Of a stretch of DNA of 64,000 nucleotides, positions 45,501 to 50,178 are shown piece after piece (position 1 is the first letter of the stretch; each line of letters begins with the position of its first letter). Source of the stretch: Amoeboaphelidium protococcarum X5 (Eukaryota; Fungi; Aphelidiomycota); the NCBI GenBank assembly GCA_023515725.1, contig JALDTO010000158.1:248001-312000 (forward strand), written 5' to 3'. Made by a program: the position numbers and the translations under genes. The notes beneath the pieces were generated by a model that did no database searches, had not been told where the DNA came from, and worked only from the letters and a program-made list of their open reading frames with translations.

Positions 45501-48500
45501 TGGCTCAAGGCGCCAAGCCTGGCGAAGGAGGTAATTTGTATTTGTTTTATCATGATCTAATCGACTAGTATTCGTGCTAATTGTATTATTGTAGGTGAAT
45601 TATCTGGACATAAAGTGTCGGAAAGTATTGCAAAGACTAGAAAGACTTCGGTCGGCGTCGGTCTTATCTCACCACCTCCTCATCATGACATTTACTCTAT
45701 TGAGGATTTGAAACAGCTCATTCATGACCTCAAGTCATGCAATCCTCGTGCCAGAGTCTCTGTGAAACTGGTATCCGAAGTTGGAGTTGGTGTCATTGCC
45801 AATGGAGTGGCCAAAGCAAAAGCTGATCATATCTTGATCAGTGGACATGATGGCGGTACAGGAGCTTCTCGTCTGACTGGTATTAAATACGCTGGTCTTC
45901 CGTGGGAGCTTGGACTTGCTGAAACTCATTAAACGCTAGTGCTGAATGGTCTCCGTGGTAGGATTACTTTACAGACAGATGGACAAATCAAGACTGGTCG
46001 TGATGTCATAATGGCCACGTTGCTTGGTGCCGAGGAGTTTGGATTTGCCACTACGCCTCTCATTGCTATGGGATGTATAATGATGCGTAAATGTCATCTT
46101 AACACATGTCCTGTTGGTATTGCTACACAGGATCCCGTGTTGAGAGCCAAGTTTACAGGTTCATCAGAGGATGTTATCAATTTCTTCTACTTTATGGCGG
46201 AGGAAGTGCGTCAAATTATGGCTCAGCTTGGATTTCGCAAACTTAATGATTTAGTCGGTAGAAGTGATCTGTTGCAAGTTCGCTCTTAGCAGAAAGATTA
46301 GAAGAGCTCATGTTTAGACTTGCGCTCTCTACTTACACCGGCGTTTAGTTTACGCGCCGATGCTTCCACTCATTTCTCTGAACCTCAGGATCATATGGTT
46401 GAATAGAGACTGGATAATAAACTGTTGCCATAGTGTGTTGCTGCTTTAGAGGGTCACGGTAAAGTAGTGATCAACTCGCAGGTTCTGAATACTGACCGTT
46501 CTGTTGGTGCTATAATCTCCTATAATGTGTCTCGAAAGTTTGGCGAGCAGGGTCTACCAGATGATACCATAACGATTAATTTTAATGGATCTGCTGGACA
46601 AAGTTTCGGTGCTTTCTTGGCAAAGGGCATCACCTTGAAAATTGAGGGCGACACTAACGATTATGTGGGTAAAGGTCTCTCTGGTGGAAAGATTATTGGG
46701 CGTCCTCCAAAGAATTCTCTCTTTGATCCGAGTTAGAGCATCATATCAGGCAATGTGTGTCTGTATGGTGCAACCAGCGGTGAGGCGTACTTTAATGGTG
46801 TGGCCGCTGAGAGGTTCTGTGTCAGAAATTCAGGTGCTCGCGTTGTGGTGGAAGGTGTCGGTGATCATGGTTGTGAGTACATGACAGGAGGTATTTGTAT
46901 AGTATTGGGTAAGACTGGCCGCAATTTTGCTGCTGGTATGAGTGGTGGGTTTGCGTATATCCTGGATGAAGATCAGTCTTTCTCATCTCTAGTCAATCCT
47001 GAGATGGTTGATTTAGAGAGGTTGACTGATGCTGCGGATATTGATCAAGTTCGTGGTTTGATTCAGAATCATTATGAGTATACCAATTCTGTCAAAGCAA
47101 AAGCTGTCCTCAACAACTGGAAGCATTACGTGCAGATATTTGTGAAGGTATTTCCGCGAGATTTGAAAAAGGCCTTGTAGTCGTAGCGAGTGAATAAGAA
47201 TAAACGTAGCTCGGCAGTCATTCAGCCTCCTGTATTATCCGCGTCTATTAAAGATATAGAAGATGGTGCGACCAAGATAACAGCTGAATCGCCTGATTCT
47301 AAACCTGATAAGTTGCGAGGCTTTATGAAGTATAAGCGATAGACGGATAGATATATAGATGCCAAGGAACGAGTCAAAGGATTTGGAGAGATTAACAAAC
47401 GTCTTACAACCAAGGAATTGTAGGTATAAGGTGCCAGATGCATGGACTGTGGGGTCCCATTTTGTCAATCTCATACAGGCTGTCCTATAGGAAATCTTAT
47501 CCCGAGATGGAATGATCTTGTCTATTAGCACTAGTGGAAAGAAGCGCTGGAGAGACTGTTGTAAACTAACAATTTTCCAGAGTTTACAGGTCGTGTATGT
47601 CCTGCGCCGTGTGAAGGTGCCTGTGTGTTGGGCATTAACTCTGATCCTGTGGCGATTAAATCTATTGAATGTGCCATTATAGATTATGCTTTCGATCATG
47701 GCTGGATGAAAGCGAGTCCTCCAACTCGCCGCTCCGGTAAGACTATAGCTATTATTGGCAGTGGTCCAGCTGGTCTTTCTGCTGCCGATTAATTGAACAA
47801 AGCTGGTCATGGTGTGACGGTTTATGAGCGTGCTGATAGAATAGGAGGTCTGTTGATGTACGGCATTCCAAACATGAAGTTGGATAAGTTGTTGGTGGAC
47901 AGGCGTGTGAATTTGATGAGAGAAGAAGGTGTTAAGTTTGAAGTTAATGCTCATATTGGATACAATGTAGATGCCGCAAATCTTGTGCGGGATTATGATG
48001 CAGTTCTTATTGCAACAGGTTCAACTGTACCGCGCGATCTGAATATCAAGAACCGCGCTCTTGATGGTATTTACTTTGCAATGGACTTCCTGACTGCCAC
48101 TACACAGAGTCTTTTGAATTCCAACCTCAAGGATGATCAGTATATTACAGCGAAGGGTAAGAATGTCATTGTCATTGGTGGAGGTGACACTGGTAACGAT
48201 TGTATTGGAACTTCAGTTCGCCATGGAGCCAAGTCTGTGATCAACTTTGAATTGCTGCCAGAGCCTCCAGGCACCAGATCGATTGATAATCCATGGCCTC
48301 AGTTCCCAAGAGTCTTTAAGGTTGATTATGGACATGGCGAGGTGAAAGCTGTTTATGGCAATGATCCTAGATAGTACTGTGTGCTGAGCAAGGAATTCAT
48401 ATCTGACGGAAATGGCAAAGTGTCTGGTATCAGAACGGTTCGAGTTGAATGGACGAAGAATGCATCCACTGGCAAATGGATAATGACTGAAGTCTAAGGA

Positions 48501-48945: not shown

Positions 48946-50178
48946 TCAAAAGCTTTATTGTAAATTTAATTCATATTTCCGCTTAATCTGATTCCTGTAA
49001 TATTGACGAAAGTAATGGCCCAGATGATTAACAATCGCCAACGCGCATAACGCTCTGACCACCAGTCTCCCTCTACCATTGGTGATGATAGCTTCATATG
49101 CTTATGTCTACTTGGAGTAGTTGCTGTTATGATTAATTCTGTTAGTACTGTTAGAGAAACGAGAGCGACTCTTGTTCTACTAAAGCATTCGAATCTTACT
49201 ATGCATGGCCGTCTTCAATTTTAAATTGAGATACGTCGAATTCACCATCATTATGATTATAGATAGGAATGAGATCATCAATTTCATCAAAGAGCGGTTG
49301 CAATTCAGTGAATGCTTGGTAGAAGATATCGCCGACAAAACTCTCTTCTGTACCAACTTATTATTACTATTATTCTACTAACAGCTACTCTTGGACACCA
49401 CGGTCTGTGGCTAAGCTTGAAATTCCACCATCGTTGATGATGACGATTCCAGGGGAGTAAGCGGAAACCTCTGCCGGATATTCACAGTTGGATACTTGGT
49501 ATTAATATCGTCACTGTGAACAGTCTTCAATACTGCAGATTGAGGACTTTCCGCTTACTCCTAAACCTGGAGTTGTAAATGTTGATGAGTAGATATGGAT
49601 TAGAGAGGAGATGGAGGTAGTAGATACGCATTTGCATCAAGAGATAAATCATCTTTAAGACCATGACTACCAACATTGCTTTCGCCAGAGCGTGTATTAG
49701 AATCTGAGCCAACATTGGTAGATATCATCTAGGACATTAACTCGAACTGGGATTACAATTGCTCCATCTTGGACATTAGATCGATATTCTACTATTCCAG
49801 GACTTGTACGCGAGATTGGAGTAATTAATTTTCACATCGAAGTTAATCATTATCAGCCTTGGCCTATTACAGCGCCAGCTCCTTCTTCATCTGACTAGCT
49901 TTGGCAGAGGCGCGATTCTTCAATACCCTCTGCTTTTACTTCTCACTCAACTCAGATGTGTCAATCTTACCGCGCTTCTTCTTACGCACATGTCCAGCAT
50001 TCAAAACATCTTAGGGATCATTGACAGAGGCAGCAGATAGGTTGTCGGAGTTTAATGATTATGAGGATTATTGTGATGGTGATAAAGATGGCTACTATTC
50101 CAGAGATAAAGATGGAGAGGAATCATTAACAGAGTCCGCGACAGACACCATATCTGCTGCATGCCTTGATCGCTTCAT
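48946..50178 (-). CDS. HAC1: HAC1/XBP1-like bZIP factor (unspliced form 410 aa; predicted IRE1-spliced form 340 aa ending at 49094)
   Basis: EKQKQRVLKNRASAKASQMKK followed by a leucine zipper (LRCENQLLQSRVQVLEQQNIDLMSKMEQL), then ESPQSAVL overlying an IRE1-type stem-loop. Confidence 0.8.
49474..49535 (-). other. Predicted unconventional (IRE1-cleaved) intron, 62 nt
   Basis: Loops CTG|CAGT (49538-49532) and CGG|CAGA (49476-49470); 14-bp exon-exon stem 49548-49561/49454-49467; removal shifts into a second long open frame. Confidence 0.8.

Follow-up and report, generated by a model that had tools for sequence, protein, structure and literature searches.

In yeast and human, ER stress is answered by a splicing switch in which IRE1 excises an intron and a transcription factor is activated. 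As this switch is common to animals, fungi and plants, its presence in Aphelida, which is sister to Fungi, is expected and would be only moderately surprising. The literature search retrieved no report linking aphelids and IRE1. Among the described systems, HXL1 of Cryptococcus neoformans is by its features the closest analogue of the element reported here from the aphelid Amoeboaphelidium protococcarum (PMC3154848). At 56 nt (2 mod 3, as here), the HXL1 intron is comparable in size and has CAG at both borders, its bZIP is likewise divergent and beyond BLAST reach from Hac1 and Xbp1, the unspliced ORF is long in both genes (~406 aa in HXL1) and pairing between intron and 5' UTR is found in neither of them (PMC3154848). 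Unlike the aphelid splicing, which is predicted, HXL1 splicing was shown by RT-PCR and is Ire1-dependent, and HXL1 possesses a conventional intron too (PMC3154848).

Metazoan XBP1 shares with the aphelid gene the 7-nt loops, a long S1 stem and a zipper after cleavage, the last being predicted here (PMC4687415, PMC11077094). In both, a frameshift, again predicted for the aphelid, replaces a hydrophobic tail by an activation domain (PMC11077094). The 26-nt element of XBP1 has a three-stem fold, whereas the 62-nt aphelid one has a fourth helix resulting in a linker-free four-way junction, and the aphelid 3' loop CGGCAGA falls outside the metazoan C(C/U)GCAGC (PMC4687415, PMC11077094). The distance from the hydrophobic segment to the stop is ~95 aa in the aphelid and ~50 aa in XBP1 (PMC11077094). 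Plant bZIP60 also has CxGxxG twin loops beside a stem and loses a hydrophobic segment on splicing, as predicted here. Its intron has 23 nt and its activation domain is N-terminal, whereas the acidic tail of the aphelid protein would be gained by splicing (PMC11077094). Fungal HAC1/hacA introns carry twin hairpins at their borders as well, and the long second-exon ORF of the unspliced form resembles that of Aspergillus (PMC6222058, PMC13703316). Heal-and-seal ligation is likely to be shared with fungal HAC1, including that of Rhizopus (bioRxiv 10.1101/2023.11.16.567474). In contrast to fungal HAC1, no yeast-like pairing of the intron with upstream sequence was found (candidate pairing was no better than in shuffled sequence) and folding revealed no structured 3' targeting element (z ~0). 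The initial annotation had called the aphelid intron unusually long. This did not hold, as 62 nt is an ordinary length because known introns span 19 to ~850 nt (PMC6222058), that of HXL1 being 56 nt (PMC3154848).

On the basis of its sequence and predicted fold, the aphelid element very probably represents an IRE1 substrate intron of the HAC1/XBP1/HXL1 kind in a UPR bZIP gene, for which splicing is predicted. If true, the IRE1 splicing switch would be placed in Aphelida, in a parasite of algae, and a gene model annotated in unspliced form only would be corrected. The gene would also be a test case for whether hydrophobic-tail targeting of the XBP1 type predates fungi, and for which ligase is used by early fungal relatives.

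The gene is situated on the minus strand of the window, the 64,000-nt stretch of A. protococcarum X5 contig JALDTO010000158.1 that was analysed. ORFs of the window are long only when TAA and TAG are read as glutamine, and UAR-to-Gln recoding is on record for A. protococcarum (PMC5304391). The ORF and its domain are as follows.

48946 to 50178, minus strand: unspliced ORF of 410 aa in a single exon, bZIP-like (TAA/TAG = Gln)
49768 to 49947, minus strand: degenerate bZIP domain, about aa 78-137 (Pfam bZIP_2, Atlas features)

The ORF (50178-48946) is flanked by the genes for exportin-1 (CRM1) and glutamate synthase. The aphelid origin suggested in the initial annotation was supported by the protein relatives, which are those of A. 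protococcarum. A stop-free piece of the ORF used as query retrieved a 410-aa hypothetical protein of this species with 95% identity, and the related proteins MP228_001293, MP228_012658 and MIR68_006617 are all annotated as hypothetical. The same genome possesses a duplicate gene of 91% identity and a second assembly has two more copies, giving four in total. Homologue searches with the bZIP ORF found copies from A. protococcarum only and none outside the species, and metagenome scans with the DNA pattern and with the protein gave no match to the element or the gene.

The bZIP domain is divergent. Pfam bZIP_2 matched with E=0.001, which is below the cut-off, the Atlas hits were bZIP, and a PDB sequence search with the protein gave non-significant bZIP matches only. 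The bZIP signature is NxxSAxxS(R) (PMC4736632). At 49917-49891, four of its five residues are kept while the arginine is replaced by glutamine in all four copies (CAG, 49891-49893, minus strand); other clear bZIPs of the genome keep the arginine. The DNA specificity of the Gln-bearing bZIP may differ.

The twin-loop element is composed of the following parts.

49566 to 49571, minus strand: 5' arm of the outer exon-exon stem, pairing with 49448-49453
49548 to 49561, minus strand: 5' arm of the main exon-exon stem (S1), pair probability ~1.0 over the first 12 bp
49522 to 49548, minus strand: 5' splice hairpin of 4 bp, a 1x1 loop, 5 bp and a 7-nt loop (49538-49532)
49474 to 49535, minus strand: intron of IRE1 type as predicted from the loops, 62 nt long and in phase 1
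49480 to 49521, minus strand: intron-internal hairpin of 9 bp + 6 bp, including the stem 49520-49513/49488-49481
49467 to 49479, minus strand: 3' splice hairpin of 3 bp (one U-G) with a 7-nt loop (49476-49470)
49448 to 49467, minus strand: 3' arm of the exon-exon stems (main 49454-49467, outer 49448-49453)

Both 7-nt loops fit CNGCAGN and are 62 nt apart. If each loop is cut behind its third base, as predicted between 49536 and 49535 and between 49474 and 49473 on the minus strand, 49535-49474 would be taken out, and the 62-nt spacing (2 mod 3) agrees with what had been claimed. Loops, arms, outer arms and intron stem were all found at the minus-strand positions assigned to them in the initial annotation, with small adjustments. 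The exon stem had been described as a perfect one of 14 bp. Its arms (49561-49548/49467-49454) are indeed 100% complementary, and the stem has 13 bp with both loops displayed because A49548 and U49467 had each been assigned to two helices at once. The intron's own stem is present as placed and is longer than claimed, and the 3' hairpin amounts to no more than 3 bp.

The region folds at -54 kcal/mol with z=-7.65, none of 200 shuffles being as stable, and the element showed the highest stability among 913 minus-strand windows of 140 nt. The conformer displaying both loops is a linker-free four-way junction composed of the 13-bp exon stem, the 5' hairpin, the intron hairpin and the 3-bp 3' hairpin, with -51.1 kcal/mol. 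In the minimum free energy structure (-53.0 kcal/mol) the exons are already paired further, akin to the post-cleavage zipper of XBP1 (PMC4687415). The 3' hairpin has ~1% predicted ensemble probability and is the weak point of the fold. When cofolded as separate strands, the exon arms gain four extra pairs.

The combination of twin CNGCAG hairpins and an exon-exon stem was found at two places in 205 kb of genome sequence, namely this gene and its duplicate. The scanned sequence includes 28 loci from a genome search for bZIP (PF00170), a search which did not list this gene, and no twin loops were found within ~1.5 kb of these loci. The pattern was also absent from 60 shuffles of the window. In the 23.6-Mb genome, an RNA model of the element matched the two copies, on either strand, and nothing else, and Rfam contained no relevant family for it. 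A CAGCGTG motif 405 nt upstream was discarded as evidence because it is altered in the duplicate gene. At 48976-48988 (minus strand), shortly before the unspliced ORF ends, 10 nt of the S1 5' arm are repeated and kept in all four copies. This repeat may pair with the 3' arm, and chance or codon constraint are possible as well.

Removal of the 62 nt in silico changes the 410-aa protein to a predicted one of 340 aa. The reading frames concerned are given below.

49094 to 49473, minus strand: exon-2 frame after the predicted removal, 125 codons and a junction Ala, with the stop TGA at 49096-49094
49234 to 49290, minus strand: hydrophobic stretch in the tail of the unspliced form, aa 297-315, with a Kyte-Doolittle value of 1.76 here and 2.17 in the duplicate
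49009 to 49065, minus strand: a further and less pronounced hydrophobic stretch in this tail, aa 372-390

The tail after removal contains 18% D/E, 18% Q and 2% K/R, and the unspliced tail 3% D/E and 14% K/R. The assignment as a bZIP gene with IRE1-type twin loops and a frameshift to an acidic/Gln-rich tail was supported. Both frames have the same stops in the four copies, with indels of 3n only. The net acidity of the exon-2 frame is 0.16, and among 1017 overlapping off-frame windows from 14 other ORFs none was both open and that acidic. A direct test for selection on both frames at once was not significant (P=0.10-0.33). By comparison with XBP1, the segment at aa 297-315 appears HR2/TMD-like and would be lost on splicing (PMC11077094). 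Gaining an activation domain in place of a hydrophobic tail follows the logic of XBP1 and may work in the same manner here (PMC11077094). A 62-nt patch at 49249-49310 (minus strand) has 2 variable columns in the four copies; one of its frames codes for the hydrophobic segment, the other for an acidic-aromatic motif. Further downstream, a G+C-rich stretch of 29 nt at 49030-49059 (minus strand) is invariant in the four copies; it falls in the would-be spliced 3' UTR and showed no significant fold.

Conservation analysis showed that the duplicate gene has the same 121 nt as 49565-49445 without any difference, against 7.9% of differing sites in the remaining ORF. This identity is significant within the ORF (permutation P=0.008), and no identical run in 9 kb is longer; conserved flanking genes contain others of 113 and 118 nt. 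Across the four copies, 49563-49445 has 2 variable columns against 155/1288 overall, and loops, 62-nt spacing and phase are invariant in all of them. The four copies (91-97% identity) revealed no compensatory, one compatible and two breaking changes in the stems. The intron hairpin has an A-U to G-U change in two copies, position 49462 of the main stem is mismatched in two copies (C-U in place of C-G), and the outer stem has one broken pair in one copy.

From these features, the following mechanism can be proposed. In the resting form, the unspliced mRNA would be translated into the 410-aa protein, and the hydrophobic tail of this protein may direct the mRNA to the ER in the manner of the HR2 of XBP1u. 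Under ER stress, Ire1 would cut behind the G of each loop in the four-way-junction conformer. The exons would then zip by the four added pairs, which join 49545-49542 to 49471-49468 and resemble ES1 of XBP1, and the intron would depart as its own hairpin. A heal-and-seal ligase, probably the ligase-kinase-2H-HAD protein described below, would join the exons, and the frameshift would produce a bZIP of 340 aa whose activation tail is acidic/Gln-rich.

Two expectations of the initial annotation concerned the machinery of the switch, and one of them was borne out. Ire1 is encoded by the genome in two copies, as ORFs with TM, kinase and KEN (PF06479, E=4e-37; signal-peptide exon not resolved). Trl1 or RtcB as such did not appear. 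The genome search gave no candidate for RtcB (PF01139 and TIGR03073), the ligase of XBP1 (PMC4687415, PMC11077094), and, unlike in fungal HAC1 systems, none for the canonical Trl1 ligase/kinase domains (PF09511 and PF08303) or Tpt1 (PF01885), such blanks being no proof of absence. The tRNA splicing endonuclease (TSEN) was found, therefore some ligase should exist. A divergent ligase-kinase-2H-HAD protein was found instead, in the form of a duplicated 990-aa ORF which combines DUF7920 (KENG motif), a P-loop, a Trl1-type 2H phosphodiesterase (PF08302) and a HAD-like end.

L035, 4466 to 1488, minus strand: first copy of the 990-aa four-module ORF
L038, 1861 to 4833, plus strand: second copy of the 990-aa four-module ORF

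Its first domain is weakly linked to T4 Rnl1-type ligases by Atlas features, and PDB searches with the ligase pieces gave nothing useful. The T4 ligation route works without Tpt1 (bioRxiv 10.1101/2023.11.16.567474). We hypothesise that this protein is a candidate ligase for tRNA and UPR exons.

The exon-exon joint was not found in the assembled contigs of three runs covering the gene, contigs being prone to drop rare forms. Two deep contigs cross the element unspliced, one run has a low-depth hole there and one run gave no contig for the gene. The two deep runs are not recorded as RNA, but they cover the ORF region and nothing beyond it; one deep contig stops five bases past the unspliced stop. 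Without ER stress, unspliced mRNA is the expected bulk form. Since this form is expected in bulk and contigs lose rare forms, the contigs neither confirm nor refute splicing. A contig of run X8 extends 176 letters past 50173 with unlike sequence, which is either a divergent 5' end or a chimera.

The lack of a junction in the contigs, the weak 3' hairpin, the Arg-to-Gln change in the bZIP signature and the canonical ligase not found in the genome would all suit an element that is cut by Ire1 for decay (RIDD-like) or controls translation and is never ligated, possibly a relic of a UPR intron in a bZIP without usual DNA binding. Such an element is improbable here, as loops and 62-nt spacing are invariant in four of four copies, the second frame remains open, ends at the same stop and resembles an activation domain in composition, and the bZIP shows strong purifying selection (pN/pS 0.08).

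Removal by the spliceosome is still less probable, and very much so. The retention of the stretch in deep contigs argues against constitutive removal of this kind. Suitable GT-AG pairs do exist, as GT at 49533 would give an in-frame intron of 63 nt if the acceptor AG is the one that ends at 49471, or a 65-nt one if it is the AG that ends at 49469, the latter leading into the same exon-2 frame as the 62-nt removal. However, this GT and AG arise from the CNGCAGN loops themselves, donor and acceptor sit within hairpins, and the 62-nt unit cannot slide to GT-AG ends. Introns of this size are present in the genome, and a likely 64-nt GT-AG intron at 45531-45594 (plus strand) joins two frames of the neighbouring glutamate synthase gene. 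That intron has 27% GC and 48% T, is unstructured and carries CTAAT 18 nt before its end, whereas the element has 39% GC and 27% T and is folded, with no near branch motif. Since the GT-AG pairs would give introns of 63 or 65 nt, the junction needs base-level resolution.

Chance, or gene conversion between the duplicates homogenising a coding stretch, would fit the identical runs of 113-118 bases in the flanking genes and the absence of covariation in four copies, and is the least credible reading in view of the fold (z=-7.65), the pattern-free window shuffles, the equal conservation of the two copies in the second assembly, and a site just after the bZIP with a frame outcome matching the known system.

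For the preferred reading as an IRE1 substrate intron, the ligase and the bZIP are possibly the unusual parts worth following. A wider version of this reading would join three features: a real intron ligated via the four-module ligase-kinase-2H-HAD protein, with neither RtcB nor canonical Trl1/Tpt1, as a naturally occurring T4-like route that includes a phosphatase of its own; XBP1-style ER targeting by the hydrophobic unspliced tail; and a signature-Gln bZIP with, hence, a changed DNA target. Taken together, this combination is tentative and rather doubtful. The Ire1 gene and the bZIP gene are ~95 kb apart on one contig in both duplicate sets (contigs C158 and C200), a shared location which is probably without meaning.
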